Positions 1 through 15,890 of a stretch of 64,000 bases of DNA are shown one piece after another. Position numbers and translations under genes: made by a program. Below the pieces are notes generated by a model, which searched no databases, was not told the DNA's origin, and was given only the letters and a program-made list of their open reading frames with translations. Position 1 is the first letter of the stretch. Every line of letters starts with the position of its first letter. Location of the stretch: sequence record OR228459.1; one strand, written 5' to 3'.

Positions 1-23
1 TATCTTCTCTGTATAAGAAGATA
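1..23. repeat. Terminal inverted repeat/hairpin TATCTTCT-N7-AGAAGATA
   Basis: 8-bp perfect inverted repeat at the first bases of the window. Confidence 0.7.
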
Positions 24-83
24 GAAAAGTACTAAAAAGTACTACACACCTTTTTTACAAAGTACCATTCAACCTTTTTCCCG

Positions 84-172
84 AAAGTACTCCATCCTAA
101 ATCCCAATCCTAGAAATTTTGGAGTACCCTCCAACCTCCAGCTAAAATCTCAAAAGTACTCCATCCTAAATC
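84..172. repeat. 20-bp direct repeat AAAGTACTCCATCCTAAATC (84-103, 153-172)
   Basis: Two identical copies 69 bp apart in a C-rich non-coding end region. Confidence 0.85.
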
Positions 173-188
173 TGAATCAACAAAATGC

Positions 189-217
189 TGGACAACCATT
201 CAGTACTAAATTATAAT
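189..217 (+). promoter_or_regulatory. sigma70-like promoter
   Basis: TGGACA-17-TATAAT, with AGTACT in the spacer. Confidence 0.55.
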
Positions 218-250
218 GTTATTAGTGGGAATCTACCCTCGTATATATGA

Positions 251-288
251 TGCTGTATATAATATCAGTACTGAACGAATTAACAGTA
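251..288. promoter_or_regulatory. Two overlapping LexA (SOS) boxes
   Basis: tgCTGTATATAATATCAGta (251-270) and taCTGAACGAATTAACAGta (269-288); both fit CTG-N10-CAG. Confidence 0.7.
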
Positions 289-483
289 TTAGTAGATATA
301 CCAGTACTGAAAATATTTTGAAAATAGTTGTTGACACCGTGGGAATATTTTGACATAATACACGGCATGGAAGATGTGGTGAGTTATCATCCTGACTTCT
401 GTCTTGTTTATGAAAATAGATTGAAACAGTACTAACACGTTTATAACAACGTAACAGTACTGATATGAAGTGAAAAGTATTAC

Positions 484-503
484 CCACCAGCTTAAGCTGG
501 TGG
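484..503. other. Perfect palindrome of two inverted Chi sites
   Basis: CCACCAGC-TTAA-GCTGGTGG. Confidence 0.85.
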
Positions 504-686
504 ATGTGGTTAGAATAATAAGAAGGGGAATCCCCAATCATACGATGAACTATATTCAATTCTACCAGTACTGCGAATAGTTACTCCACAAGAATGAGAA
601 GACTGTTGTAGTACTGAACTTTTTATGACGAGAAAATTTGAATAGATTTTGGGTGTACTTATCCTGTACTCTGGACGGATTAAGGG

Positions 687-794
687 CGTGTTTGATTCTC
701 ATTCGCATATAAGAATGATAAACTTTCTCAACATGAGAATGGTTCTCAGTTGCAAATAAGAATAGTTCTCAAATGAGAATAATAATGATTATCG
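687..794. promoter_or_regulatory. Array of about 5 Fur-box-like 7-1-7 inverted repeats, ~23-bp period
   Basis: TGAGAAT-g-GTTCTCA (734-748), TAAGAAT-a-GTTCTCA (757-771), TAATAAT-g-ATTATCG (780-794); partial units at 687 and 710. Confidence 0.7.
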
Positions 795-945
795 TTTTCA
801 GTACTAGACTAATTTTTCCATTGGCTAGCCTACCGCGACGGAATATAATATTCCGGCAGTATCACGAATCAGCTTGTTTTAAATCTGCCGTTATTATCTC
901 AATATCTGGGTAGAATGTCAAGCTAATATTTTAAAAAATAAATGC

Positions 946-974
946 TTGACACGTTGGCAGTACTTTGCTATTAT
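946..974 (+). promoter_or_regulatory. sigma70 promoter of non-coding unit 1, divergent from a minus-strand promoter at about 893-921
   Basis: TTGACA-17-TATTAT; the minus-strand partner reads TTGACA-17-GATAAT. Confidence 0.75.
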
Positions 975-979
975 ATACA

Positions 980-1040
980 CATAGCAAGAACAATGCTCAA
1001 GCCCACAGGGTGCGGAGGTGTATTCGTTAAAAGCTAAATG
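980..1040 (+). ncRNA. Putative small RNA, ACCC-N-GGGTGC family, copy 1
   Basis: Core GCCCACAGGGTGC at 1001-1013; own promoter; no ORF follows; ends approximate. Confidence 0.5.
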
Positions 1041-1056
1041 CGAATGATTATCATTT
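1036..1056. promoter_or_regulatory. Fur box between convergent copies 1 and 2
   Basis: aaaTGCGAAT-g-ATTATCAttt. Confidence 0.65.
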
Positions 1057-1111
1057 CGCTCATATGATACATTTCCGCACCCTCTAGGGTCTCCGCTTTC
1101 TCGCGTCTATA
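1055..1111 (-). ncRNA. Putative small RNA family copy 2
   Basis: Promoter TTGACG(1145-1140)-17-TATAAT(1122-1117); core ACCCTAGAGGGTGC at 1090-1077; ends approximate. Confidence 0.5.
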
Positions 1112-1295
1112 TAGTAATTATACGGTAATGCGGTTTATGCGTCAAGTACTTTTTTAAAGAAAATCGAAAATAATTTAGTACTATATGTATATAAGGAAGG
1201 AAAAAGAATTTTCAAAAAGTACTTGCATTCTAATTTAACCTATTGCATAATAGCTACATCGAAACGAGATACACAAACACATTAAGGAAAACGAT

Positions 1296-1529
1296 ATGAT
1301 TCGCATTGTTCGCATTAATTACTCTACCGGTGAAGCTGATAAAGTAGCGGTTATTGTATCAGAAAAGAATGATGATCATCTACACAATACGCTGATGCGT
1401 TTTGTTAGTGCGGTTGACCGTTGGGCTAGTATTGAGTACTTAGAAACGTTTAAAGTCCCTGCCGTCCAGCTTAACGGGCATGATATTAAAGCAATTTGGA
1501 ATGCTGACGAAATGATCGCGAACATGTAA
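1296..1529 (+). CDS. Hypothetical early protein
   Basis: ORF with TAAGGA RBS and upstream promoter. Confidence 0.8.
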   Translation: MIRIVRINYSTGEADKVAVIVSEKNDDHLHNTLMRFVSAVDRWASIEYLETFKVPAVQLNGHDIKAIWNADEMIANM

Positions 1530-1620
1530 TTATTTCAAGTACTATCAAAATTTACTTGACTTACTTTGATAGTACTTTATAATACTTACATACAAACGAA
1601 GTACTATTAAGGAAAGCATT

Positions 1621-1752
1621 ATGATCACTATCGAGAAAATCCGTTTAGCAGTAGAAGAACTGATCGCGGCTGGCTGGATTGTCGCAGAAAGTGAAGAAGA
1701 AATTAACATTGTAGTAAATGGTATGTATTCAGTTATGACAAACGTGGAGTAA
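1621..1752 (+). CDS. Hypothetical protein (43 aa, MITIEKIRLAVEEL...)
   Basis: Read by hand; TAAGGA RBS and promoter cassette. Confidence 0.75.
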   Translation: MITIEKIRLAVEELIAAGWIVAESEEEINIVVNGMYSVMTNVE

Positions 1753-1834
1753 GTTAGTATTAAAAGTACTTGCATTTACTTAGCGAGTACTTTATAATAC
1801 TTACATACAAACGAAACACTATTAAGGAAATATC

Positions 1835-2452
1835 ATGGAAAACATTATCGACGTTATCAAGTCTGTTTCTTATGCTGATCTGAATGAAGCACAAAAAGAA
1901 AAAGCTATTGAGATCATGCGAGAGTTAGAGAATCAAGAAATGACTCCGTTTTGGTCTGTAGATATTACTGATCAATGGAAAGAAACTTTAGACACTGAAT
2001 ACGGCATTACTGATGCAGTGATTTATTGGTCTGGTTTTTGTTCACAAGGTGACGGTGCATCGATTAGTACTGAATACTATATTGATATTGAGAAGTTTTT
2101 ACGTAAATGTAAAGCGTGGTCAAAATTCCGTGTACTGCACAAAATTATTGACCGTGAAGAAATTCATGCTAAGATTGATCGTAGCTCAAGCCGTTACAAT
2201 CATGAAAACACTGTAAGCGGTAGCGTAGAGCTTGATTATAACATTGATTGGACGGCGAAGCAGGAAAGCGAAGCTGAACGCTTAGAAGAATTTTTGACCG
2301 AAACTATTCGCGAACTTTCTTGTAAGCTGTATAAAGAACTTGATAATGAGAATGATTATCAAAACAGCGATGATGCCCTTTGGTCTACCATTGAAGCAAA
2401 TGAATATGATTTTGCTGTAAACTCAAACGGCGACGTTTTGCGTATCGCCTAA
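1835..2452 (+). CDS. Acidic hypothetical phage protein (YWSGFCSQGDGAS motif)
   Basis: ORF, RBS, promoter; motif recalled from other phage hypothetical proteins. Confidence 0.8.
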   Translation: MENIIDVIKSVSYADLNEAQKEKAIEIMRELENQEMTPFWSVDITDQWKETLDTEYGITDAVIYWSGFCSQGDGASISTEYYIDIEKFLRKCKAWSKFRVLHKIIDREEIHAKIDRSSSRYNHENTVSGSVELDYNIDWTAKQESEAERLEEFLTETIRELSCKLYKELDNENDYQNSDDALWSTIEANEYDFAVNSNGDVLRIA

Positions 2453-2557
2453 AGTACTGACATACTGTAAAACGCTCTATAACGCATTGTAGGGCGTTTT
2501 AAGGAATAGCAGTATCATTTATCATCTTAATTAATTAAACGGCGTAGACGGCGATTT

Positions 2558-2728
2558 ATGAGCAAACAAGATATATTGAAAGGGGATGTTTTATACTGGT
2601 TAGATCCTGATGATGGGATCTGTTCTGGATGGGTAACAGTATTAGACGTTAATACTACAGTACTGGTAAAAGGTGCAACGGCAGAATTTGAAGTGCTACC
2701 CGAAGAACTTTATTCGCATGAAGTTTAA
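2558..2728 (+). CDS. Hypothetical protein (56 aa, MSKQDILKGDVLYWLDPDDG...)
   Basis: Read by hand; fills the gap before the next promoter. Confidence 0.65.
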   Translation: MSKQDILKGDVLYWLDPDDGICSGWVTVLDVNTTVLVKGATAEFEVLPEELYSHEV

Positions 2729-2757
2729 AAAGTACTTGCAAAGTAAATCTAAAAGCG

Positions 2758-2812
2758 TATAATGATTTGCATAGGGGGAAACATCTTCCCCCCACTATTA
2801 AGAGAAACGATT
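2758..2812 (+). repeat. Repeated promoter/5'-stem-loop/RBS cassette (PeSL-like), 10 copies
   Basis: TATAAT-gRtttgc-ata-GGGGGAAacatcTTCCCCC...TAAG(G)A; -10 boxes at 2758, 4715, 5069, 5834, 7903, 9429, 10584, 17305, 18160, 18857. Confidence 0.9.
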
Positions 2813-3253
2813 ATGACTATCTACTATCTGACTTATAAAACCGCCGACAATGTAACTGATGCTAATGTGACCGCAAACACGGTACAGGAAGCAATGGAAG
2901 TACTGAAAGCGGAACTACCTGATATTCAGATCGTTTGTGTAGTTGATACCGAAACGAATCTTAAAACTATTATTGACCACTATGATTATTTCCGTGGGCG
3001 TAAGTTACAGGACTGGTATCATATCGAAATAGAAACACGTGAACTACCAGAAGAACAACAGCACTTTGAGCAGGGTACTAGCATTTGGGTTACTACCGAT
3101 AAACGCATATATTTCTGTTCACGCATACACGTTAACAAGCGTGTTAAAATTGGGGCAGATTCATATAGTGGACTGTTTACAAATAGTAACCTACTAAATG
3201 ACAAGTACATAAAAGTTTATGAGCGTTTTGGAACTGATATTTACGCTTCATAA
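2813..3253 (+). CDS. Hypothetical early protein
   Basis: Start moved to the ATG after the cassette RBS. Confidence 0.8.
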   Translation: MTIYYLTYKTADNVTDANVTANTVQEAMEVLKAELPDIQIVCVVDTETNLKTIIDHYDYFRGRKLQDWYHIEIETRELPEEQQHFEQGTSIWVTTDKRIYFCSRIHVNKRVKIGADSYSGLFTNSNLLNDKYIKVYERFGTDIYAS

Positions 3254-3258
3254 TATCA

Positions 3259-3290
3259 CAAAGGGGAAGCAATTGCTTCCCTGTTTATTT
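3259..3290. terminator. Bidirectional intrinsic terminator
   Basis: GGGAAGC-AATT-GCTTCCC flanked by A and T tracts. Confidence 0.75.
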
Positions 3291-3350
3291 GTACAGTACT
3301 ATAATCTATAGATACAATACCGCACCCCGTGGGCTAATGTGTTTTCATGG
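3259..3350 (-). ncRNA. Putative small RNA family copy 3, about 90 nt
   Basis: TTGACA(3384-3379)-17-CATAAT(3361-3356); core at 3336-3322; ends at bidirectional hairpin 3259-3290; near-duplicate of copy 7. Confidence 0.6.
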
Positions 3351-3782
3351 GTATTATTATGCCAGTACTACAAACATTTGTCAATCATTATTTTCAATTA
3401 ATTTAAACGCACTGTAACACTGTATAAGGCGTTTTGTTATTAAGGTAAGCAAACGTATTGAGTACTATCTAAAAGGCCGTTGTGGGCTTGCTGGTGGCGT
3501 TGTGTTGTAGTATTGAAATATAAGGAAAATATAAAAAAGGCTGTCAATGATTAAAAAAGTACTTGACGGATTGATTTAGTACTGTCATAATGTATCACAT
3601 AGAGCGGCGGGATGGATAAACATTCCTAAGTAGACAGCCAGTAAGTCATACGAAAGACTGGTGCCGAACTGAAAGAAAGATTGAAAAGAGTTTTAAAAAG
3701 TACTTGACAAGCTGGTGGGAAATTGAGATAATGACCCCGTAGACAGCAAACAACCTAATTAAACTTTAAGAGGAAATATACA

Positions 3783-4370
3783 ATGACTACTACTACTGAA
3801 AATGCACGTGTTACCCTGAAATCTGCACTGGAAGCTGGCGACGTTAAAACCCTTGCTGTTATCCTTGCGAAAGTTGGTCATGATAAAGACGGCGTATCTA
3901 AATTGGGCTTGACTTTCTCACTGGCGGTTAAGGAAGCGAAGGAAGTACTTAAAGAGCAAGCCAAAGCAGCAGAAGAAGCTGCACGTCAGGCAGCAGAACG
4001 CCGCGAAGCTAAAAAGGCTGCACGTCAAGCCGAAGAAGAAAAGCGTCAGGCTGAGATCAAGGCAGAAAAAGAAAATATGCTCAAGTTCCTCATGGATACG
4101 GTTAACGGTATGGGCTTAGACCTTGAGGCGGCAGAAGCGGCAGCAGAAGCGGCAATTGTTAAAAAGTACGGCGATGTTAACAAAGTACCTAAGTATACTT
4201 TTAACCGTGTAGCGGTGATTGTAGACGGTAAAGAATACAACATGCCAACTTCTGGGAACATGGTAGAAGTACTTAAAAATGCACTTGAAGCAAGCGGTAA
4301 ATCGCGTAAAGAGTTTATCATCGAACACGCGAAAGACAAGGCAGAAGCGGAAGCGGCATTCGCTGAATAA
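3783..4370 (+). CDS. H-NS/StpA-like protein with altered DNA-binding loop
   Basis: Coiled coil (ERREAKKAA vs H-NS ERREEESAA); C-terminus PKY...G-NMVEVLKNALEASGKSRKEFII vs H-NS AKY...[23 protein letters not shown]; two tandem promoters. Confidence 0.6.
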   Translation: MTTTTENARVTLKSALEAGDVKTLAVILAKVGHDKDGVSKLGLTFSLAVKEAKEVLKEQAKAAEEAARQAAERREAKKAARQAEEEKRQAEIKAEKENMLKFLMDTVNGMGLDLEAAEAAAEAAIVKKYGDVNKVPKYTFNRVAVIVDGKEYNMPTSGNMVEVLKNALEASGKSRKEFIIEHAKDKAEAEAAFAE

Positions 4371-4387
4371 TAACAGTACTAAACTAT

Positions 4388-4414
4388 AGGCGGCCTAAGT
4401 GGTCGCCTTTTTTT
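4388..4414 (+). terminator. Intrinsic terminator
   Basis: AGGCGGCC-taagt-GGTCGCCT plus T tract. Confidence 0.8.
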
Positions 4415-4428
4415 AATTGGGGGATTAT

Positions 4429-4689
4429 ATGGCTGTAGGATTCGCGAAAGACGGGGCAGAACAAGACGAGATTTTAGCGGTCATAAACGCCGCTGTAAGC
4501 CACGCAAGGAATCAGATAGGGGATAGTACTATTACAAGTAGAACGCACTGCCTAGACTGTTCTAGGACTATTCCTGAGCGTAGACGGGAAGTAGTAAAGG
4601 GTGTTAAGTACTGCGTAGAGTGTCAGGCTGATCATGATAGTATATTTAAAAGAGATCCGCGTAATTGTTGGCACAGATCTATGAGATAG
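4429..4689 (+). CDS. TraR/DksA C4-type zinc finger protein (YbiI-like)
   Basis: MAVGFAKDGAEQDEI...CLDC..IPERRREVVKGVKYCVEC. Confidence 0.85.
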   Translation: MAVGFAKDGAEQDEILAVINAAVSHARNQIGDSTITSRTHCLDCSRTIPERRREVVKGVKYCVECQADHDSIFKRDPRNCWHRSMR

Positions 4690-4770
4690 TACTTGACATA
4701 CTTTCTGATTAAAGTATAATGATTTGCATAGAGGGAAACATCTTCCTTCACTAATTAAGGAAATAGAATC

Positions 4771-5043
4771 ATGCGTACACCAATGACCCGCGAAGAAATA
4801 CACACAGTACTGACAACTAACATTCAGGACTGGAAGAAATACGCAGATATTAACGAAGCTCAAGACTTGAACAATGAGCTAGATGGTGAAGATCTGGACG
4901 TAATTTGTTCCCCTGAGTTTTATGATGATATTCATTCCGATGATGATGTTTGGAATGTACTGGAAAAGCATTTCCTCGATACTGATTTAAGTATCTACTC
5001 GCGTGATACTTTTATTTTAATTCACAACATTTATAACAAATAA
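4771..5043 (+). CDS. Acidic hypothetical protein
   Basis: ORF after cassette; D/E-rich. Confidence 0.8.
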   Translation: MRTPMTREEIHTVLTTNIQDWKKYADINEAQDLNNELDGEDLDVICSPEFYDDIHSDDDVWNVLEKHFLDTDLSIYSRDTFILIHNIYNK

Positions 5044-5122
5044 TTGTTGACTTACTTATATAGTACTGTATAATGGTTTGCATAGGGGGAAACATCTTCC
5101 CCCATCAATTAAGGAAAAGAAA

Positions 5123-5332
5123 ATGACTCGATACACTGTAGAAGTACGTACTACTAAAAACATTGCTACTGATGTGATTCGTTATTATAAGATGGTTTGT
5201 GGTGTTGCTCGCCGTATTAGTAAAGCGGATTATGACAAGCTGGATCGCGAAGCTGATGGTATGGATTGTTTTTATACAGTAAACACAAAAACGCATACAA
5301 AGCAATTTAAAACATTGTCTTATTACATGTAA
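5123..5332 (+). CDS. Hypothetical protein
   Basis: Start after cassette RBS. Confidence 0.75.
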   Translation: MTRYTVEVRTTKNIATDVIRYYKMVCGVARRISKADYDKLDREADGMDCFYTVNTKTHTKQFKTLSYYM

Positions 5333-5415
5333 AAAGTTTTACTCCAGTACTTGACAATAGATGCGAGTACTGGCATAATAACTTTATTGAAACGAAATAC
5401 TATTAAGGAAATATC

Positions 5416-5805
5416 ATGGCTAATCTCATTGTTCGATTGTATGAAGATTGTTTCTACTTTTAGTATTGTGGGAAACCTATATCCGTTAAAGAGATGATCG
5501 CATCGGGCTATATGTTATCTAAGCATGATCACACTGGATTCATGGCTGAAATGGTTGCGGCTAGTTATAAGTTTGGTGAAGAATGGGAAGCACAATATTT
5601 TCCGGCTGTCAATGCAATGATTAAGCGGTTGGCAGAACACACTGAGTTTATGGAATTTTGGACTGTTTTAAAAATGGTTGACGTGAATCAGAATGGGGAA
5701 ACGTGTCAGCCATACGCACATTTTGACGCTGGGGAAGATATTAGCACAATTTGGAAATGGTTGGAAGATAAATTTACAACAATTAAAATTGCAGATTACT
5801 TGTAA
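5416..5805 (+). pseudogene. ORF interrupted by in-frame TAG at codon 16 (5461-5463)
   Basis: RBS-backed ATG 5416 is in frame with ORF 5494-5805: MANLIVRLYEDCFYF*YCGKPISVKEM... Confidence 0.65.
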
Positions 5806-5889
5806 AAGTACTTGCATTACTATCTGAAAAGCGTATAATGGTTTGCATAGGGGGAAACATCTTCCCCCACTAACTAAGAGAAGAATATC

Positions 5890-6270
5890 ATGGCTAATCA
5901 AATCACTCCAGCACAGACCTTCAATAAATTCAGTACTGAAATCGTATTGAAAGAGTATGTGCCAGATTATGGTTGGACTGATGCATGTGTATGCACTGAT
6001 GTAGCAGATGCAAAGCAACGCATTAAAGATTATCGTGCGGAGGGTTTACAGGTTAAAACTGCCCGTCGCCGTGTACTTAACAAAGATGCTTTCTTATGTC
6101 AAGCTCTTTTAAACTTCTGCCGTGACTACTATCGCCGTACTGGTGGATTATGGCCTAATGAGGTTGAAGTACTGAAATCTAACGGTAAAGTAAAATTTAC
6201 CTTGACTTTAAAAGAAATTGAGGAAGTACTTGGTGATGATTGTTTTTTAGTAACTTCACAGCCAGCATAA
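5890..6270 (+). CDS. Hypothetical protein
   Basis: ORF after cassette. Confidence 0.8.
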   Translation: MANQITPAQTFNKFSTEIVLKEYVPDYGWTDACVCTDVADAKQRIKDYRAEGLQVKTARRRVLNKDAFLCQALLNFCRDYYRRTGGLWPNEVEVLKSNGKVKFTLTLKEIEEVLGDDCFLVTSQPA

Positions 6271-6339
6271 AAAAGTACTTGACACATAACGGGGATATGA
6301 TACAATATCCCCATATTGAAAAGTAATGGAAGTACTGAA

Positions 6340-6531
6340 ATGAATTATCAAAAGGTTAGCAAGCGAGTAGTTGAACTCTCTAAGAAAGCACGTAAAGAGT
6401 ATACCTTAGAACGTTCAATTAACAACTATCATTTAAAGCAAGGTGATAAGTTTATTGTTATTGACGAACCTTTGGAAATCGTGTATATTGTAGTTAATGC
6501 GATGATTCGTGATAAAACGAGGATTAAGTAA
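6340..6531 (+). CDS. Hypothetical protein
   Basis: ATG after GGAAG; promoter upstream. Confidence 0.7.
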   Translation: MNYQKVSKRVVELSKKARKEYTLERSINNYHLKQGDKFIVIDEPLEIVYIVVNAMIRDKTRIK

Positions 6532-6786
6532 ATGCGTACATTAGACCAACTTATTGACCCTAATACGTCAGCACGTCGATCAATGGTTACTATCGGCGGT
6601 AATGGTAAACAACACTGGAGTGGTTACATTTGCTTTATTGTTGGTGGAAAAATGTATGAGCGGGTAGTATATCACAAAGAGATTAATTATATACTATTCC
6701 GTAAAGAAGTCATAGCAGTCGATCCTACCGCCCTAAAACCGATTGCAGGGGCATGGAACAAAGAATCGCTGTACCTTACAGCTTAA
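6532..6786 (+). CDS. Hypothetical protein
   Basis: Translationally coupled ORF. Confidence 0.75.
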   Translation: MRTLDQLIDPNTSARRSMVTIGGNGKQHWSGYICFIVGGKMYERVVYHKEINYILFRKEVIAVDPTALKPIAGAWNKESLYLTA

Positions 6787-6835
6787 CCAATAAAAGGCCG
6801 CTACGTGCGGCCTATCGCGTTCTAGAGGGTATATT

Positions 6836-7024
6836 ATGAATACTGTACAAGTACTAGATGAGATTGAAAAAATTGTTGACAGTACTAACAAACGTGATAT
6901 ACTGTTATCAAGAAATAAGGCTAACCAGTACGAAAAGAATTGCGTACAATCTGCACTAGGGGGTAACTTTGAATCGCTACACTCAACCATACTTCAAGGG
7001 AATAACAACCGCCCACCAGCGTAA
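6836..7024 (+). CDS. Hypothetical protein
   Basis: GAGGG RBS. Confidence 0.6.
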   Translation: MNTVQVLDEIEKIVDSTNKRDILLSRNKANQYEKNCVQSALGGNFESLHSTILQGNNNRPPA

Positions 7025-7226
7025 AAAGAAACTACACATAGTACAGAAACGAAAGCGTAAAGTACTTAAACTTAAACCAACATATAGTTGGGGATTGTCG
7101 TGGGATGAAATCAATCACGGACTATCATGGAATCAATTATATGTTATTGGCTCAAGTGTTGGACGCTTTCATTTTAGTACTATATCACGACAAGAAACAC
7201 GTGTAAACCCATATAAAAGTACTTGA
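6969..7226 (+). CDS. Basic hypothetical protein
   Basis: TTG start with AGGGGG upstream; overlaps previous ORF. Confidence 0.45.
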   Translation: MNRYTQPYFKGITTAHQRKKKLHIVQKRKRKVLKLKPTYSWGLSWDEINHGLSWNQLYVIGSSVGRFHFSTISRQETRVNPYKST

Positions 7227-7256
7227 CATATATCCGGCTTAGTGAGATAATACTTA

Positions 7257-7310
7257 CAAGCCGGAGAAACGGCGTGACCCATAGGGTGCGAAGAAGTAAT
7301 CAGTACTTGA
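7257..7310 (+). ncRNA. Putative small RNA family copy 4
   Basis: TTGACA(7223)-17-GATAAT(7246); GCCG-gagaaa-CGGC hairpin, then ACCCATAGGGTGC at 7277-7289; ends approximate. Confidence 0.5.
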
Positions 7311-7325
7311 GAATGATAATCATTT
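7306..7325. promoter_or_regulatory. Fur box between convergent copies 4 and 5
   Basis: TGAGAAT-g-ATAATCAttt. Confidence 0.65.
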
Positions 7326-7373
7326 ACAACACTAGACAGATTTATGCACCCGATGGGTTAGATTGTTTTCATG
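7320..7373 (-). ncRNA. Putative small RNA family copy 5
   Basis: TTGACA(7407-7402)-17-TATTAT(7384-7379); core TAACCCATCGGGTGC at 7360-7346; ends approximate. Confidence 0.5.
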
Positions 7374-7500
7374 CATATATAATATCAAAGTACTGTTATA
7401 GTGTCAAGCATTTTTATTTGATAATTATTTTAAAAAAAGTCTTGCATTACTTTCTGAATAACGTATAATACTTACATCAACCACTGAGAGGAAAGAAACA

Positions 7501-7872
7501 ATGTCTATTAAGCGTATTGTATTTGGTCGCGGTGCAAGTGAAGAAGTAGTACCTGTTGAACTGATCGCGATGTTAAATGAAATGATTCGCCGTGGTGATA
7601 TTAATTTTAGTCCTGATGTAATGCCTTATGCGATTTCGTATGAGGTGCGTAAAAGTCCTAAGTACTGGAAGATTGACCGTGTAGAATTGGACAAAGAAAC
7701 CGGAGAGATTCGCGAGTTTGGGCGTAGTTCTGTTGGTGCTGTAGATTTTGAAGGGAACGTGTTTAAATCTGCCAGCTATAAAGCCGTTGCTAAGGGTATC
7801 CGTGGAAACATCTTTGTTAACAATGGTTTTAGTGCAATTACTGGTGACGGATATATTCGTTATTTAAATTAA
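7501..7872 (+). CDS. Conserved phage hypothetical protein (GNVFKSASYKAVAKGIRGNI motif)
   Basis: Resembles a widespread phage family with a GDxYKxASWKAPAK-like motif. Confidence 0.8.
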   Translation: MSIKRIVFGRGASEEVVPVELIAMLNEMIRRGDINFSPDVMPYAISYEVRKSPKYWKIDRVELDKETGEIREFGRSSVGAVDFEGNVFKSASYKAVAKGIRGNIFVNNGFSAITGDGYIRYLN

Positions 7873-7959
7873 AAAGTACTTGCAAAGTAATCTGATTAGC
7901 GTATAATGTTTTACATAGAGAGGGGAAATAGTTTCCCCTCCATATTAAGGAAAAGTATC

Positions 7960-8196
7960 ATGGCACAGAAAATCACTCGCGATAACGTAGAATTTTACAT
8001 TGATATCCTGAATACTAAACTTGAAAAGATGGGTGCTCCACTACGTTACAAAATGATCCCTGTTGCTGGTGGTTATGAGTTGCAAAAGTACAAGGGTGAT
8101 ATTCAGGTTGATTATTGTGTATCTGGTCAAAAACTCCGTGAAGTTTATGAGATTGTACGTTTTGCAGCTAACATGATTTCGGATAACGTGAAGTAA
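7960..8196 (+). CDS. Hypothetical protein
   Basis: Start after cassette RBS. Confidence 0.8.
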   Translation: MAQKITRDNVEFYIDILNTKLEKMGAPLRYKMIPVAGGYELQKYKGDIQVDYCVSGQKLREVYEIVRFAANMISDNVK

Positions 8197-8276
8197 TTAT
8201 TATCAAAAAGTACTATTGACAGAAACATGATAGTACTTTATAATACTTACATCAATTAAGCAAAGAGGAAAACAAA

Positions 8277-8582
8277 ATGCAAATGTCTAACCTGTATGTA
8301 GCTCACATCACTATGCGTCATGGTGAATATGAAACACTGGTTAAACGTCTGATTATTGCTAAGAGTTTAGCAGAGGCAGAATTATACGCCTATGAAGAAG
8401 GGATGGCAACATTTGACGGTAGCGAATTAGAAGATAAATCCAGCTATCAAGAAGCGGATCAACCTCATACGTGGTATTTCTCAGGCGGGGATTGGTGCGT
8501 TACTCTTAATGCAGTTACATGGATTGAGGATCGCGAAACAGCTAAAGTAATTGCTAAATCTGATTTACTGTCTTATCTGTAA
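8277..8582 (+). CDS. Hypothetical protein
   Basis: ORF, GAGG RBS, promoter. Confidence 0.8.
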   Translation: MQMSNLYVAHITMRHGEYETLVKRLIIAKSLAEAELYAYEEGMATFDGSELEDKSSYQEADQPHTWYFSGGDWCVTLNAVTWIEDRETAKVIAKSDLLSYL

Positions 8583-8649
8583 AAGTACTTGACAACCTTT
8601 CGGGGGTAGGATATACTATCCCCATCAATTAAGCAAAGAGAGAAACAAA

Positions 8650-9060
8650 ATGTTTAAAATTACTAGCGTAGAAAAAAGCGGCGATTCCATGATTGTAAGT
8701 GCTTTCTGGAATGATGCTTGTCAAGTATCTATTAGCTTTAATCAAATGGGCGTAGTACAATCCTGTACTTTCGCAGAGGATACCAAAGAGCGAGCACAAT
8801 TAGAAGATCATGCACGTTCGGTAATTAAATTCAATATTCCTATTGAAATGGAACCTAATATCATTTATACTGATGATCAGGTCGAGCAAATGAAACGTTG
8901 GTATGAATCTTTGATTAAAGCGGAAAAGGTCATTGCAGAAATGGATCAATGTATCGTTGAAGCTGATTGGTTATCTGATATGTTCGGGCAAACATCCGGT
9001 AGCATTATTGATGCCCTGTTTAATGTTCGTGCGGCGTTAGATCCTCGCATCAATCAATAA
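8650..9060 (+). CDS. Hypothetical protein
   Basis: ORF, promoter, terminator downstream. Confidence 0.8.
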   Translation: MFKITSVEKSGDSMIVSAFWNDACQVSISFNQMGVVQSCTFAEDTKERAQLEDHARSVIKFNIPIEMEPNIIYTDDQVEQMKRWYESLIKAEKVIAEMDQCIVEADWLSDMFGQTSGSIIDALFNVRAALDPRINQ

Positions 9061-9063
9061 AGA

Positions 9064-9101
9064 AAAAAGGGGTTGACTTCGGTCGCCCCTTTTGTTATTA
9101 T
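9064..9101 (+). terminator. Fused terminator/promoter element (also at 14032, 14966, 16164, 17132)
   Basis: GGGGTTGAC-TTCG-GTCGCCCC-TTTT; TTGACT in the stem lies 17 bp before TATTAT. Confidence 0.75.
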
Positions 9102-9106
9102 ATAGT

Positions 9107-9165
9107 CATTGGCAGATAAGCTACTAACCCATAGGGTGCAATAGTCTGTCTGTAGTATTTTAGTA
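9107..9165 (+). ncRNA. Putative small RNA family copy 6
   Basis: Core TAACCCATAGGGTGC at 9125-9139; shares CATTGGCAGATAAGC with copy 10; ends approximate. Confidence 0.5.
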
Positions 9166-9237
9166 CTGAAAAATAGTTCTTGCTTTTATGTGCTGGTGGT
9201 GTATAATACTTGTATTGAAACAAACGAGGGTTCAATT

Positions 9238-9399
9238 ATGGAACATGATTTTGATTCATCGGATTTTGAGTTGGCTAGTGATTATGCATGGCATCTTATG
9301 CAAAAAGAAGGTAAATCCGAAACTGATGCATTAATGCAGGCGGCTAACCAATATAATATTAATTACGTATCATTACAAGGATATTGGGATCAAGCATAA
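9238..9399 (+). CDS. Small acidic hypothetical protein
   Basis: GAGGG RBS; promoter with Chi in its spacer. Confidence 0.75.
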   Translation: MEHDFDSSDFELASDYAWHLMQKEGKSETDALMQAANQYNINYVSLQGYWDQA

Positions 9400-9483
9400 A
9401 AAGTACTTGCATTACATATTCAGTACTGTATAATGGTTTGCATAGGGAAAAACAACTTCCCCCACTAATTAAGGAAATGAATT

Positions 9484-9948
9484 ATGAATAGCATCCAGTT
9501 CGTAGAAGCCATTGAAAAAGAATTCCTGTCAGTATTTCCTAACGGTTTCTTTATTGCCCGACCTTTACCGTTGGGCGGTGATGTAGGGATCACTATGGGA
9601 CTGACTCGCGAACAGGCCGATTGTCCTCATAATATCCGTGATAATGATCGTATGCGTATGACCTTCGCGATCCACGGTATGAAGTTTGGGGATAGTGAAG
9701 ATTATAACGACAAGTTAATTATGGAACCGTACTATTCAGCGATTAGCACGATTCCACGCAAGCCATACTACGCTATGGGACACGATAAGATCAAGACACG
9801 CAAAACCACTAACACGCCGGAAAAATTGATTGTAACGCTTTCTAAGTACATTAAAACCGCAGGGCAGCAAGTAAAAGAGCTAGCAGAAGTAAACGAGATT
9901 TATCAGCAGGAACAGATTAAACCTCAGTACTTAGAAATTAACGTGTAA
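9484..9948 (+). CDS. Hypothetical protein
   Basis: ORF after cassette. Confidence 0.85.
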   Translation: MNSIQFVEAIEKEFLSVFPNGFFIARPLPLGGDVGITMGLTREQADCPHNIRDNDRMRMTFAIHGMKFGDSEDYNDKLIMEPYYSAISTIPRKPYYAMGHDKIKTRKTTNTPEKLIVTLSKYIKTAGQQVKELAEVNEIYQQEQIKPQYLEINV

Positions 9949-10016
9949 TTATTATCAAAAGTACTTTACAAATACAGTAGAGTACTTTATAATACTTACA
10001 TCAATTAAGCAAAGAG
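9946..10016 (+). repeat. ~70-bp near-identical promoter module (copies at 9946, 10248, 12128; diverged at 8194)
   Basis: taattattatcaaaAGTACTttacaaatayagtagAGTACTtTATAATacttacatcaaytaagcaa. Confidence 0.9.
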
Positions 10017-10025
10017 GGTTACAAA

Positions 10026-10250
10026 ATGGCGGCTAAAACTTTTGAACAGTTAAAATGGGTTGCTGGTCAAATCACTGATGATCTGATGTATTCCCGAATG
10101 AATGAAGCAGTACTAAAAACCGTTTTCAATCGCCGGACTAAATCTACTGAAATGGCTACCTTATGCGGCCTTGTATGTGCTAGTGCAATGGAACGTAAAA
10201 TTAATACAGAAGTAATTGAGCGTTATTTACGCAACGTACATACTGAGTAA
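10026..10250 (+). CDS. Hypothetical protein
   Basis: ORF between two copies of the module. Confidence 0.8.
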   Translation: MAAKTFEQLKWVAGQITDDLMYSRMNEAVLKTVFNRRTKSTEMATLCGLVCASAMERKINTEVIERYLRNVHTE

Positions 10251-10327
10251 TTATTATCAAAAGTACTTTACAAATATAGTAGAGTACTTTATAATACTTA
10301 CATCAATTAAGCAACGGGATTTATACT

Positions 10328-10558
10328 ATGGATAATCGTGAAATCATTGCTCAAGTACTGACACGTATTTTAATGTCAACTCGACTTTCACAGGTACGCA
10401 ACATCACAGCCGCACATGAAAATACATGGCGTGAAGCCTTAAATGGTAGTAATGCAAGTCAGCTAGCGGCGGATAATAAGCTGAAAGAAGTTATCAAGTC
10501 TGCTATGGCAGAATTGAATGATGATGCAGTAAATTATGTTTTAAATTCTTTCAAATAG
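10328..10558 (+). CDS. Hypothetical protein
   Basis: ORF after module. Confidence 0.8.
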   Translation: MDNREIIAQVLTRILMSTRLSQVRNITAAHENTWREALNGSNASQLAADNKLKEVIKSAMAELNDDAVNYVLNSFK

Positions 10559-10638
10559 TAATTGCATTACTTCTGAAATAACGTATAATGGTTTGCATAG
10601 GGGGAAACAACTTCCCCCACTAATTAAGGAAATATAAT

Positions 10639-10947
10639 ATGATTGCTAACGTTCAAGCCAACTTTGAAAACCAATTCATCAATGAAATATTGCGACTGGA
10701 TGATGGGGTCGCACGTATTAACTACGGTTTTAACTCCGGTGGTTATGAAAGTAACGTGTACTTTTATACTGCTGACGGTGGTACACTGGCAATCGATACG
10801 GTAATTGTTGAAATACAAAAAGTAAACTTCAATGATGAAAATGATCCACAGTGGTATATCATCGGCTATGACGTGAACTATGAAGATCAAGATCTTTATG
10901 ACTCACATACAGGCCAGCAAATCATTCCCGCTTATGGGGATGAATAA
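10639..10947 (+). CDS. Acidic conserved phage hypothetical protein (WYIIGYDVNYED...HTG..I.PAYG)
   Basis: ORF after cassette. Confidence 0.8.
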   Translation: MIANVQANFENQFINEILRLDDGVARINYGFNSGGYESNVYFYTADGGTLAIDTVIVEIQKVNFNDENDPQWYIIGYDVNYEDQDLYDSHTGQQIIPAYGDE

Positions 10948-10950
10948 TAA

Positions 10951-11043
10951 CACAAAGGGGAGCTAACACTCCCCTGTTTATTTGTACAGTACTAAATCAT
11001 ATAGATACAATTCCGCACCCTGTGGGTTAGATTGTTTTCATGA
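10951..11043 (-). ncRNA. Putative small RNA family copy 7, about 90 nt
   Basis: TTGACA(11077-11072)-17-TATAAT(11054-11049); core at 11029-11015; terminator 10951-10980. Confidence 0.6.
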
Positions 11044-11162
11044 CAATAATTATACTTAAAATCGGGTGACGTGTCAAGCATTTATTTTATTAAAAACGTA
11101 CTTGCAATTTTTCAGTACTGTAGTATAATACTTGTATTGAAACGAGATAAGGGAAACACAAA

Positions 11163-11702
11163 ATGATTACACAAATCTATCACGGCAGCACCCGTTTTGA
11201 TACTGCTGGTGGATATAAAGGCGGCAAGCCTAACAGCTTTCAATATGGTGTAGGTCTGTATTGTACTAATGCTTACTTGTGGGCTGAGAAGTACGGTCGA
11301 AGTGTTTATGTATTAGATGTGGAACTCAAACCAGAACACCACGCCGACAATGTAGAAATTACAATTGAAAACTTGCAATATTGGGTTAACTGCTATTGCT
11401 CGCAAAAAGTAGCAAAGATCTTTAAAAAGGAATTCAGCCAGCGTAAAACTATGACTGCAAATCGCTTTGAATTGTGGTTGTACTGGAATGTAAGACGCTT
11501 TAAACCAATCGCCGTACAATTAGCTGCTTTCTTTGCTGCACAAGGTGTAACCCATAATAGCGAGGTTGGCAATTATGGTGGTAAACTCATTCGTATCTAT
11601 GACTTTGATATTATCAAAGGTTACACAAAGGATAAAGAAGTACTACAAAAGTTAAACTACAACAATACAGAATTACCTGATTATCTGAAAGAAAAAGTTT
11701 GA
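11163..11702 (+). CDS. ADP-ribosyltransferase-like protein
   Basis: IYHGS...YGVGLYCT...AEKY, the H-Y motifs of the PARP/DT-like ART fold. Confidence 0.55.
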   Translation: MITQIYHGSTRFDTAGGYKGGKPNSFQYGVGLYCTNAYLWAEKYGRSVYVLDVELKPEHHADNVEITIENLQYWVNCYCSQKVAKIFKKEFSQRKTMTANRFELWLYWNVRRFKPIAVQLAAFFAAQGVTHNSEVGNYGGKLIRIYDFDIIKGYTKDKEVLQKLNYNNTELPDYLKEKV

Positions 11703-11759
11703 CAGTACTAAGGGAGTATTATATAATACTCCCATCTTAAGAAAACAAGGAATTACAAA

Positions 11760-11984
11760 ATGTCTTTATACTCACTGGAAGTTGAACATCATAACTTTAG
11801 TACTAAAATGATTGTAAGTACTGATGCAAAAGAGAGAGAAGATCAGTACAATGAAGTTATGACATGGGCTAAAGGTTTCTATCCTGCTGGGACTATTTTA
11901 AAGGCTAAGTGGGTATCACATGAAACTAAACTTGATTTTCATTCAGCTATTGCTGGTGGTTATGAGGGGATTAAACTGTTATGA
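11760..11984 (+). CDS. Hypothetical protein
   Basis: AAGGA RBS, promoter. Confidence 0.75.
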   Translation: MSLYSLEVEHHNFSTKMIVSTDAKEREDQYNEVMTWAKGFYPAGTILKAKWVSHETKLDFHSAIAGGYEGIKLL

Positions 11985-12130
11985 AAAAAGAATTTATCTT
12001 GCGAGTACAAATGAAAGGCGGTGCACAACGTACTTTTCGTGAATGGGGTTGGTCTGCTGGTATGGCCTTTGAACAGCTTAAAAAAGATAATCCCGATGTT
12101 CAATACAAAATAGAATCAAAAGAGGCGTAA
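11981..12130 (+). CDS. Hypothetical protein (49 aa)
   Basis: Read by hand; ATGA overlap; GAGGGG RBS. Confidence 0.7.
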   Translation: MKKEFILRVQMKGGAQRTFREWGWSAGMAFEQLKKDNPDVQYKIESKEA

Positions 12131-12207
12131 TTATTATCAAAAGTACTTTACAAATATAGTAGAGTACTTTATAATACTTACATCAACTAAGCAAAGAGGA
12201 TAGGAAA

Positions 12208-12345
12208 ATGAAAGAATCTCAATACGAAGCAGTACTGGCACAGACTGGTGAAGATCTGACTACTGAGCAGTACGCTAAAATTGAAGAGATGCTTTTAGCT
12301 GGTAAATCTGTTAAAGACACTGTGAAAGCAGTTCGTAAGATGTAA
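12208..12345 (+). CDS. Hypothetical protein (45 aa)
   Basis: Read by hand; follows the promoter module. Confidence 0.75.
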   Translation: MKESQYEAVLAQTGEDLTTEQYAKIEEMLLAGKSVKDTVKAVRKM

Positions 12346-12419
12346 AATAATTAGTCAGTACTCTTGACATTATCATAGAGTACTGCTATAATTACTTTAC
12401 TTAATCAGGAGAACATACG

Positions 12420-12737
12420 ATGGCTTTACATTCAGCAATGCGAAAAACTGTTAATATCTATGCAGATAAAAACATTATGGATTGTACTCTTGGACATACT
12501 GATAATCAATATGCCATTATTGTAAAAAACCCGTTCACTGGTGAAGATTGCATTTACAGTGGACAGTACTTAGAAAGTAATTTATTACCTGCCACAAAAC
12601 GCAGTGAAATGAAAGGGTATATTACCCGGCACAGAGCAGAACGTGACATTGCAACAATCTTTTTACCCGGTCAAAATGCTCGCGTGGTAACGATGGAAGA
12701 AGCAGAGATTTTTCTTGGCAGCCGCTTTAAAGTGTAG
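12420..12737 (+). CDS. Hypothetical protein
   Basis: AGGAG RBS, promoter. Confidence 0.8.
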   Translation: MALHSAMRKTVNIYADKNIMDCTLGHTDNQYAIIVKNPFTGEDCIYSGQYLESNLLPATKRSEMKGYITRHRAERDIATIFLPGQNARVVTMEEAEIFLGSRFKV

Positions 12738-12775
12738 TATAATACTTTTATCAAATCAAGTGGAGTACTAAAAAG

Positions 12776-12916
12776 ATGATTACACCTATTGCACCAATTC
12801 ACAAGACAGTGTATAATACTTATAGTACTCCAAAGCAGCAACATATTATCGAGGAACTGAAAGAACAGAAAAAAGAAGTAAAAAGTACTGGTAACCGAAT
12901 CGATATTAAAGTATAA
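12776..12916 (+). CDS. Hypothetical protein (46 aa)
   Basis: Read by hand; GGAG RBS. Confidence 0.55.
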   Translation: MITPIAPIHKTVYNTYSTPKQQHIIEELKEQKKEVKSTGNRIDIKV

Positions 12917-12948
12917 TACTTACATCAACCACAAAGAGGAATACAAAA

Positions 12949-13287
12949 ATGGCTATTACTTCTATCTTCTGCAACACCCGAAACGAAGCACGTCAGGCTA
13001 AAATCGATTTCAACGGTAAAATTGTTGACAATGGTTCTGATGCACCCAAGGGACAGCGTTGGGAAGTACAATACGAAGTAGCCCCCGTATCTGATGCCAT
13101 CGCGGAACTTGCAGCAATCATGCAAGCGGAAGTACAAGACATGGCACTAGAAGAAGTGTCTCCACGTGAGATTATGGGTCTTCCACGTCCTGTAAGCAAG
13201 AATAAAAAAACCCGTGCTGTGATCATGAAAGATCGCAAAGGTAATTCAGTTACTGTACAGGTTCGTCGTCGCCGCATTACTGCCTAA
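12949..13287 (+). CDS. Hypothetical early protein (KIVDNGSDAPKGQRW motif)
   Basis: ORF, RBS, terminator after. Confidence 0.8.
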   Translation: MAITSIFCNTRNEARQAKIDFNGKIVDNGSDAPKGQRWEVQYEVAPVSDAIAELAAIMQAEVQDMALEEVSPREIMGLPRPVSKNKKTRAVIMKDRKGNSVTVQVRRRRITA

Positions 13288-13327
13288 CCGAAAGGGGGAG
13301 CAATCCCCCAAACTTTTAAGAGGATTT

Positions 13328-13579
13328 ATGAAGAAGCAAGTACAACTAATTAATGGTAATTTCATGCGATTGCATTATAAACCGCAAAAGAAAATCATTG
13401 AGAAAGCTACAAAGGTAGCAAATGATTTTGTTAGTGGGACAGTTCGCCCCCGTAAACTATCTAACGGATTGTTTCAAGTACTGGATATTAGCAGAACAGA
13501 ACGTATCGTAATTGATAAGGAAAAGCAAATACATTTAATGAGTCACGAAAAGTACAATGATTTTGTGAATCAGCGTTGA
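13328..13579 (+). CDS. ParE/RelE-like toxin-fold protein
   Basis: Basic 83 aa ending LMSHEKYN, the C-terminal signature of the ParE-like phage family. Confidence 0.55.
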   Translation: MKKQVQLINGNFMRLHYKPQKKIIEKATKVANDFVSGTVRPRKLSNGLFQVLDISRTERIVIDKEKQIHLMSHEKYNDFVNQR

Positions 13580-13633
13580 CAGACTACCGACAACATAGTA
13601 TAATACTTTCATCAACTAAACGATGGTTCTAAA

Positions 13634-14023
13634 ATGAAAAATATTGTTTCTGCTATCGCTATCGCTGTTATGTTTTCTTCAACTCCAGTTATGGCATACA
13701 CTGTTAATCTGAATGAATTGACAGATTGGGGAAATCAAATGCGTGATCGCTTTGCAGTACCAGACCATATCCAGCCGCAGCAAAAACAAGGTAGTGAAAT
13801 GTTATGCCGTGGGGTAATGACTAACGAGCAAACCGGACAACAAATCCGCGAACAATTCAGTACTAGTGGTGAACGTTCGGTATCGGGTAATGATATCATC
13901 TATCATGATGAAGATGAAACCGGAAGCACTACATTGCAAATTAATGCAAAAACTGGTAAAGGCTTTATTACGATGATGGACACTGAAAAAGTTATCGTAA
14001 CTGGTAATGTAGTTTGCAAATAA
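13634..14023 (+). CDS. Exported hypothetical protein
   Basis: N-terminal signal peptide MKNIVSAIAIAVMFSSTPVMA. Confidence 0.75.
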   Translation: MKNIVSAIAIAVMFSSTPVMAYTVNLNELTDWGNQMRDRFAVPDHIQPQQKQGSEMLCRGVMTNEQTGQQIREQFSTSGERSVSGNDIIYHDEDETGSTTLQINAKTGKGFITMMDTEKVIVTGNVVCK

Positions 14024-14072
14024 AGTACTAAAAAGGGGTTGACTTCGGTCGGCCCTTTTGCTATTATATATC

Positions 14073-14125
14073 CCATAGAAACAAGTTAACCCACAGGGTG
14101 GCGTAGTCCGTCCAAAATTTATTAA
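14073..14125 (+). ncRNA. Putative small RNA/leader, family copy 8
   Basis: TTGACT(14039)-17-TATTAT(14062); core TAACCCACAGGGTG at 14087-14100; the only copy directly followed by an ORF. Confidence 0.45.
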
Positions 14126-14136
14126 AAGTATAATAT

Positions 14137-14391
14137 ATGGAAATATGGAAAACAATCACTGATTCCCCTAATTATGAAGTAAGTAATTTAGGAAATATAC
14201 GAAAAATACGTGATAATAAAGGTATGGCACAAACTAATAGTAAACTTTCAGATGATGATATTAAATTCATCCGAGCTAATTTTAAAAAATGTGATCCTGT
14301 ATATGGTGGAATACCACTAGCAAAGCGATTTGGTGTATATAAAAGTACTATATACAAAATTGTACAAGGACGTGCATGGAAGCATATATAA
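14137..14391 (+). CDS. NUMOD4-HTH mini-protein (HNH homing endonuclease lacking its HNH core)
   Basis: EIWKTI...YEVSNLGNIR joined directly to SKLSDDDIKFIR...LAKRFGVYKSTIYKIVQGRAWKH. Confidence 0.7.
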   Translation: MEIWKTITDSPNYEVSNLGNIRKIRDNKGMAQTNSKLSDDDIKFIRANFKKCDPVYGGIPLAKRFGVYKSTIYKIVQGRAWKHI

Positions 14392-14394
14392 ATA
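14387..14394 (+). promoter_or_regulatory. T4-type late promoter-like TATAAATA
   Basis: Exact octamer 35 bp upstream of ATG 14429. Confidence 0.35.
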
Positions 14395-14428
14395 TATTCA
14401 TAATACCATTTTATATAAGGAGTATATT

Positions 14429-14962
14429 ATGCCGGGTAAATTTCAAGATAAAAATGGTGGGTTAATTGCAGGACATAGTGATCGCTGGTCTGATGAAAAC
14501 CGCCGTAAAAATAGTTTTAATGCTGGTGCTGGAAGTCGAGCTAGTCGAAATCAAGGACTAGGACAAAAAGGACTCGACAATACTAAAACAGATACCATTG
14601 TAGATACTTCTAGGATGAAACCAGAAGAAAAACTAAAGTACTTCCAATCTTTGGGATTACTTGGTCATCAAGAGAAAGGTTCTAAAGAGCCTCCAAAAGC
14701 AGCACCACAAAAACCAATGCCTACCGATAGTAAATCACTTATTAGTACTTTACAAGATCAATGGAAAGATGCGTTTAAAGGCGATGTACGCCATTCTAAG
14801 CGACTTATTGCAGAACTTAAGGACGTTGCCCCAGCTAAGATTAAAAAAGCTCTACAAGCTGCTTACAGGGCCACACAAGAGGTTACCGCACGTGAAGACG
14901 ACCCTCTAACAATCGTTGAATATATCAGTGATGCTATTGTTCCATTTACATATGAAGATTGA
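14429..14962 (+). CDS. Basic, low-complexity hypothetical protein
   Basis: TAAGGAG RBS at the internal ATG (MPGKFQDKNGG). Confidence 0.8.
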   Translation: MPGKFQDKNGGLIAGHSDRWSDENRRKNSFNAGAGSRASRNQGLGQKGLDNTKTDTIVDTSRMKPEEKLKYFQSLGLLGHQEKGSKEPPKAAPQKPMPTDSKSLISTLQDQWKDAFKGDVRHSKRLIAELKDVAPAKIKKALQAAYRATQEVTAREDDPLTIVEYISDAIVPFTYED

Positions 14963-15028
14963 AATAAAAGGTTGACATGAGTCAGCCTTTTTTGCTATCA
15001 TAGTCCTACACCAATAGGAGATAGTAAC

Positions 15029-15483: not shown

Positions 15484-15499
15484 CACAGGAGATTACACA

Positions 15500-15864: not shown

Positions 15865-15890
15865 TCTTGTAATTATTACAGGAGATCATT

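Follow-up and report, generated by a model that had tools for sequence, protein, structure and literature searches.

The 64,000-nt stretch analysed here (hereafter the window) is the left end of Klebsiella phage fENko-Kae01 (OR228459.1; 360,105 bp, linear), with window 1–1300 identical to positions 1–1300 of the record. The Salmonella phages Munch, 7t3, SE_PL and PHA46 are 99.3–99.4% identical over this part. The record annotates direct terminal repeats at 1–19736, determined with PhageTerm (PMC11218385). Close to the left terminus, about 0.7 kb inside the repeat, lies a cluster of sequences resembling the binding sites of the host ferric uptake regulator Fur (Table 1), which recurs in the right-hand repeat, so that each genome carries it twice. 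The paper describing the phage mentions neither iron nor promoters, and the string "fur" occurs in it only in "further" and "furthermore" (PMC11218385).

The first 1295 bases contain no convincing gene. The 46-aa ORF annotated as ENKO_001 has no Pfam match, is not called in the 99.4%-identical phage Munch and lies on DNA that aligns across genera with frame-breaking indels; we therefore rejected it as a real gene, and the first convincing one starts at 1296. No promoter-like site lies within 680–800, the nearest being at 821–849 (+) and 921–893 (−), and no credible gene lies downstream of the array on either strand. The minus-strand promoter is near consensus and points into the array. Together with a terminator-like hairpin made of two inverted Chi octamers, it would bracket a leftward RNA of roughly 400 nt (about 886 to 482).

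Table 1. Features in and around the array, in window coordinates
Position	Strand	Feature	Basis
482..505	−	Terminator-like hairpin made of two inverted Chi octamers (CCACCAGC at 484, GCTGGTGG at 496); likely 3′ end of the leftward transcript	Terminator and Chi searches; the same inverted Chi pair is at 588/600 in vB_Ec-M-J
645..690	.	Two copies of a GATTTTGGGYGTA-like motif on the left flank of the array	Read from the sequences; also next to the arrays of vB_Ec-M-J and CBB
688..799	.	Array of nine overlapping Fur-box-like 19-mers, about five 23-nt units; starts at 688, 705, 711, 729, 735, 752, 769, 775 and 781	Matrix scan, shuffles, permuted matrices, leave-one-out comparison, repeat search
773..913	+	Annotated 46-aa ORF ENKO_001, probably not a gene	Record of Munch, six-phage alignment, Pfam
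805..925	.	Conserved non-coding segment on the right flank; defines the orthologous slot across genera	Six-phage alignment
893..921	−	Sigma-70-like promoter (TTGACA, 17 nt, GATAAT, TG before the −10) pointing leftward; the array would lie at about +90 to +200	Promoter search; hexamers also recognisable in vB_Ec-M-J, less well in Hallingskeid, poorly in Muenster
1040..1058	.	Isolated strong Fur-like box (17.6 bits) at the apex of an 87-nt inverted-repeat element (1002–1088), between convergent promoters at 946–974 (+) and 1145–1117 (−)	Matrix scan, promoter search
2342..2414	.	Two Fur-like boxes (2342–2360, 19.7 bits; 2396–2414, 14.2 bits) inside the coding sequence 1835–2452, of unknown function and without Pfam match	Matrix scan
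7309..7327	.	Strongest Fur-like box of the window (19.9 bits) at the apex of an 80-nt element (7278–7357), between convergent promoters at 7223–7251 (+) and 7407–7379 (−)	Matrix scan, promoter search
253..268		LexA-box-like: CTG, ten A/T bases, CAG	Motif match
3281..3296; 10974..10989		LexA-box-like: CTGT-N8-ACAG, next to bidirectional terminators	Motif match
4429..4689		86-aa ORF with a DksA/TraR C4 zinc finger; likely early modulator of RNA polymerase	Pfam (E = 3e-8)

Fur likeness of the array

We first verified the repeats. A repeat search gave a 23-nt direct-repeat family at 733, 756 and 779, a related pair at 693–716 and 740–763, and inverted repeats through the same stretch, for example 734–752/753–771. 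The first-pass annotation, made from the sequence alone, had described about five Fur boxes starting at 687, 710, 734, 757 and 780 with no gene nearby. These starts lie within 1–6 nt of the repeats found here, and its observation is confirmed, with the single qualification of the annotated ORF discussed above.

To test the likeness to Fur sites, we built a symmetric 19-column matrix from E. coli K-12 MG1655, taking the best site in each of 15 upstream regions of classical Fur-repressed operons (fepA/fes, fepD/entS, fepB/entC, fhuA, fecI, fecA, tonB, cirA, exbB, fiu, fhuF, ryhB, fhuE, sufA and feoA) by iterative refinement. Note that the matrix was seeded with the textbook consensus and trained on these 15 sites only. 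With the base composition of the window as background, the array holds nine hits of at least 6 bits, the best reaching 18.0 and 17.8 bits. None of 5000 dinucleotide-preserving shuffles of 680–800 reached the observed maximum, hit count or log-sum, and the next densest 121-bp stretch of the window has three hits. None of 2000 column-permuted versions of the matrix reached the observed top-four sum, on this array or on five related ones (0 of 2000 each), indicating that the match is not merely AT-rich palindromy. When scored leave-one-out, the 15 E. coli sites range from 7.0 to 18.4 bits with a median of 14.8, against 10–21.6 bits on a uniform background for the array; boxes 775 and 781 outscore all 15, and boxes 688, 711, 735 and 752 fall within their range. 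We counted 6–8 hits of at least 10 bits per 121 bp (8 for this array) against 1–5 in the 15 natural operators. Clustered natural Fur sites are offset by 3 or 6 nt (Chen et al, 2007; PMC2189734), and here the pairs 705/711 and 729/735 and the run 769/775/781/787 are offset by 6 nt. Although the genome has 35% G+C and Fur boxes are AT-rich, chance is effectively refuted by these statistics, together with the recurrence of such arrays in at least seven lineages with unalignable DNA (see below). The array thus also passes the refutation test named in the first-pass annotation, as its matrix scores are far above those of shuffled AT-rich DNA.

Strong boxes are not confined to the array. Five hits of at least 17.5 bits occur in the window against 0.02 expected, and nine of the twelve hits of at least 12 bits lie in the first 7.4 kb. 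Ten copies of the CCCAYAGGGTGCG motif lie in the window, all in the terminal repeat, each 20–30 nt downstream of a sigma-70-like −10 hexamer, with two inverted pairs forming the 80–87-nt elements of the apex boxes and single arms at 3321, 9128, 11014, 14090, 17192 and 18763. Positions 964–1023 are about 90% conserved in RaK2, K64-1 and GAP32. These elements have no Rfam match, and their 15-bp basal stem is almost invariant, so that covariation does not distinguish an RNA structure from a DNA inverted repeat. Scans with Rfam, at gathering and E-value thresholds, and with ARAGORN found nothing relevant.

Two further motifs are over-represented. AGTACT occurs 241 times in the window against about 21 expected from composition, often as CAGTACTGA or just upstream of −35 or −10 hexamers, and is also dense in Muenster, vB_Ec-M-J and Hallingskeid. 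Chi octamers (GCTGGTGG) are about 50-fold enriched and strongly strand-biased within the terminal repeat, with twelve on the plus strand (496, 3490, 3711, 8065, 9192, 11205, 11952, 15834, 16840, 17826, 18721 and 19354) and two on the minus strand (484 and 7013), several of them in promoter spacers; only one per strand occurs in the other 44 kb (expected 0.27 per strand for the whole window). Muenster shows a 7:1 bias.

Fur-like and met-box-like arrays in other phages

We then asked whether the array is kept in relatives. Klebsiella phage Muenster (Alcyoneusvirus, terminal repeat 1–20030) is not alignable to this region by megablast, yet has a Fur-like array at 785–906, with boxes at 787/793, 819, 842, 865 and 888, plus apex boxes at 1079, 1306 and 2422. 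KP13-7, Erwinia phage Hallingskeid and three IMG/VR contigs also carry four to six strong boxes in the same place. Divergent relatives (Muenster/RaK2, Hallingskeid and metagenomic contigs) keep a Fur-like array in the same non-coding slot although the DNA is not alignable. Orthology of the slot is shown by the homologous right flank in a six-phage alignment, and by the Chi hairpin and a GATTTTGGGYGTA-like motif on the left. The spacing between boxes varies from 23 to 41 nt between lineages, so it is the boxes that are kept and not the period. A frequency matrix made from 38 phage boxes correlates at 0.94 with the E. coli matrix, although the boxes were chosen with that matrix; the phage boxes prefer GAGAAT...ATTCTC where E. 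coli sites prefer GATAAT...ATTATC. An identity profile of Muenster against KP13-7 was uninformative on purifying selection, as the left flank is just as conserved as the array.

The E. coli Asteriusvirus phages vB_Ec-M-J and fEgEco12 have the same end architecture but no Fur-like box in their first 5 kb. In the slot they carry a run of 8-nt tandem repeats resembling the met boxes of the methionine repressor MetJ. Using a matrix built from 22 boxes of six E. coli K-12 MetJ operators (metJ/B, metF, metR/E, metA, metN and metC), we found 18 consecutive in-register boxes in vB_Ec-M-J (773–916), all with positive score, with a mean of about 7 bits per box that matches natural boxes and is reached by none of 3000 shuffles. 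GAP32 has 15 such boxes (24333–24452) and CBB has 12 (7308–7403), again in the orthologous slot; a further relative locus (L019) carries its run at ~811. The window, Muenster and Hallingskeid have none. The apex elements differ in step with this, being 80 or 87 nt with a Fur-like box in Fur-type phages and 69 nt without one in met-box-type phages. Met-box-like arrays hit 87 phage records, including other RaK2-like phages, T5-like phages of Vibrio, Aeromonas and Providencia, and phiKT-like podophages, mostly near record ends. One of these, the 368-kb Xanthomonas phage XbC2 (OP292654.1; 647–756), is a possible counter-example to a host-MetJ reading, as Xanthomonas is not known to have MetJ.

Fur-like arrays also occur beyond the jumbo phages. 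Klebsiella phage phi1_175008 (Stephanstirmvirinae, 149 kb) has a four-unit array at 304–404 of its record, in non-coding DNA, and a blastn search with it hits 663 phage records, including many T5-like phages in their left terminal repeats. In T5 (NC_005859.1), about six Fur-like boxes of up to 19.4 bits lie at 9567–9718 with a 23–29-nt period, inside the annotated injection stop signal (9140–10149) of the repeat 1–10219. Pectobacterium phage My1 has five units at 12202–12342 of its repeat 1–12854. None of 2000 shuffles reached any of these three arrays. A comparison of 25 T5-like phages calls the T5 region highly conserved and puts the shear point near 9618, which the array spans, although its coordinates come from another T5 record and may differ slightly; it stresses DnaA boxes and describes the other repeats only as palindromes and direct repeats (Davison, bioRxiv 10.1101/866236). 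Beside the Fur-like boxes of T5 lie a perfect LexA-box-like palindrome (1781–1800 of the extracted locus), DnaA-like boxes and nine GTCGGATTTGCACA repeats. The latter and the GACGGATTTTGGGCGT motif of the jumbo phages resemble each other too weakly to count as a shared motif. Overall, every array lies 0.04–0.9 kb from a terminal-repeat boundary or a record end.

Candidate binders were searched for in these phages. With E. coli Fur and MetJ as queries, tblastn found no homologue. The T5 transfer proteins A1 and A2 gave no hit better than E = 0.2 in the window or the related loci, and the listed A2 hits are all genomes of about 108–120 kb. Among ten terminal-repeat ORFs, Pfam found no DNA-binding domain, only the DksA/TraR zinc finger and DUFs. 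The one obvious factor shared by three unrelated phage groups is the host protein. It remains possible, though unlikely in our view, that the sites are bound by a phage-encoded protein, such as a small terminase subunit or an early DNA-binding protein, with the likeness to Fur boxes arising by convergence or mimicry. Phased repeats next to genome ends are typical of packaging recognition sites (established for lambda cosB, SPP1 pac and P1 pac), all arrays found here are near termini, the phage boxes have their own base preference, and XbC2 would fit. However, the same 19-mer motif, at 18–20 bits on a matrix built only from E. coli promoters, recurs in RaK2-like phages, T5-like phages and Stephanstirmvirinae and is thus not specific to one phage lineage and its own terminase; these unrelated groups share no detectable candidate binder, and the alternative array copies the very unusual in-register tandem 8-mer architecture of a second host repressor. 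Only 64 kb of the 360 kb was examined, and only by BLAST and Pfam; a phage protein of unrelated fold encoded elsewhere in the 360 kb cannot be excluded.

Possible roles of the array and comparison with known systems

The sequence analysis shows that 688–799 is a cluster of operators of the type bound by host Fur, in a conserved non-coding slot and doubled by the terminal repeat; its identification as a host-Fur operator array is well supported, whereas the binding of Fur itself and any function are inferred. Since the array overlaps no promoter and has no gene downstream, classical repression is excluded, which leaves a decoy or a cis-acting nucleoprotein. The interpretation of the first-pass annotation is partly supported: the Fur-box array holds, and the minus-strand promoter that it inferred exists as a consensus match, while its two proposed functions, a Fur sponge and an iron-sensing switch on the minus-strand transcript, stay hypothetical. 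The met-box arrays in related phages, which cannot be seen from the window alone, reframe the feature as one of a class of host-repressor operator arrays.

We tentatively favour a role in cis. In this view, Fe2+-Fur dimers in an iron-replete cell would load co-operatively and coat about 110 bp, forming a reversible, metabolite-dependent block or landmark at the terminal-repeat boundary. Lying 90–200 bp downstream of a strong leftward promoter and 180 bp upstream of a Chi-bearing terminator hairpin, the array could stall RNA polymerase heading for the genome end, or mark the boundary for a terminus-linked step such as DNA entry or packaging. It would be the counterpart of the palindromic repeats in the T5 injection-stop region, sister phages would get the same effect with SAM-MetJ on a met-box array, and some titration of Fur would be a by-product as the DNA is amplified. 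The position of every array near a boundary or record end, the location of the T5 array across the shear point, and the further Fur-like boxes sitting exactly between convergent promoters in Fur-type phages are in line with this reading. Nevertheless, the roadblock is only inferred, the leftward promoter is poorly conserved in Muenster, and Fur and MetJ are dispensable host proteins, which fits poorly with an essential cis site.

A decoy, as first proposed, appears less likely. The array and the other strong boxes of the repeat would soak up Fe-Fur as phage DNA is replicated, derepressing, should host transcription keep running, host iron uptake, RyhB and the Fur-repressed alternative ribonucleotide reductase to feed a very large DNA synthesis; met-box arrays would likewise derepress methionine and SAM synthesis. 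The sites are far more numerous and stronger than in any natural operator, with no regulated gene, are doubled by the repeat and extend even into a coding sequence, and the two kinds of array swap in one slot as if the payload were the identity of the repressor. The arithmetic is plausible, with about 16 strong boxes per genome times hundreds of copies against a few thousand Fur dimers per cell. However, T5 destroys host DNA within minutes, so a decoy for host genes cannot explain its array, yet T5 and My1 keep such arrays, and more FhuA would harm T5. Moreover, a decoy does not require proximity to terminal-repeat boundaries, and a single infecting genome cannot titrate Fur early in infection.

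The iron-sensing switch is also unlikely. Here the leftward RNA would be the functional product, truncated by Fur bound at +90 to +200 when iron is plentiful. The promoter and terminator bracket the array, the RNA folds somewhat better than shuffles (z = −2.5), and Fur-like boxes lie in the middle of two short convergent transcription units. However, the palindromes alone explain the fold, the RNA has no good or conserved ORF and no Rfam match, the stretch between array and terminator is conserved neither in length nor in sequence (about 45 nt in Hallingskeid against 180 nt here), and the promoter is weak or absent in Muenster.

A more far-reaching but improbable reading is that the boundary regions of the long terminal repeats of large virulent enterobacterial phages (RaK2-like jumbo phages, T5-like phages and phi92-like phages) are built from operator arrays for host metabolite-sensing repressors, Fe-Fur or SAM-MetJ, which would gate a terminus-linked step by the metabolic state of the host. 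The most interesting candidate step is the pause between first-step and second-step DNA transfer, unexplained in T5 for over 50 years. By the polarity of Chi recognition, the Chi bias protects against RecBCD entering from the right end; on this reading it would mark the right end as the first to enter and the 19.7-kb repeat as first-step DNA. The right-hand copy of the array would then lie at the inner end of the first-entering repeat, as in T5, but this is inference only, and the T5 repeat, with only two Chi sites, is uninformative as a control.

If Fur really loads these arrays, virulent phages use host nutrient-sensing repressors directly on their own DNA, either to read the iron or SAM status of the host or to disarm the repressor. 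Neither use has been described for a lytic phage in the literature that could be searched, subscription literature excepted: full-text searches found no paper linking Fur boxes or met boxes to phage terminal regions and none describing natural phage decoys for host repressors, and the CBB paper does not mention such arrays. The finding would open the T5 injection-stop region to a concrete and cheap test, suggests that the host-repressor operator array is a recognisable class of non-coding module that can be annotated in hundreds of phage genomes, and implies that phage performance, including that of therapy candidates such as fENko-Kae01, may depend on host iron or methionine status.

Among known systems, the T5 injection stop signal (Repeat Region 3 of the left terminal repeat; Davison, bioRxiv 10.1101/866236) is likewise a gene-less, repeat-rich region inside a long direct terminal repeat, close to a repeat boundary, and holds Fur-like palindromes, which the papers we could read do not describe as Fur boxes. 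The T5 array is at the inner boundary, however, while here it is near the outer left boundary, so that the analogy rests on either right-end-first entry or a boundary-related function, both inferred. The DnaA-box pairs and GTCGGATTTGCACA repeats flanking the T5 array are absent here, with no match to TTWTNCACA on either strand within 1–19736 and matches only at 27.8–56 kb; no A1 or A2 homologue was found, and two-step injection is not known for this phage. Fur titration by multicopy Fur boxes (FURTA) and repeated decoy sites for transcription factors (e.g. PMC3322331) share many high-affinity sites without a target gene on DNA that reaches high copy number, but are laboratory or eukaryotic cases. 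IHF site I1 in lambda cosB offers a precedent for a host DNA-binding protein recruited next to a genome terminus; here the protein would be different, metabolite-dependent and bound as an array, with a link to packaging by inference only. Natural Fur operator clusters of Enterobacteriaceae (e.g. fhuF, fiu and fepB-entC; Chen et al, 2007; PMC2189734) have the same 19-bp motif and overlapping sites offset by 6 nt, with scores that the array equals or exceeds, but the present array has a 23-nt unit repeat, overlaps no promoter, has no downstream gene, lies on a virulent phage and is about twice as dense as any of the 15 natural operators. Finally, the sister arrays in vB_Ec-M-J, fEgEco12, GAP32 and CBB have the same 8-nt register and box variants as the MetJ operators of metA, metF and metE/R, with 12–18 boxes instead of 2–5 and no met gene.
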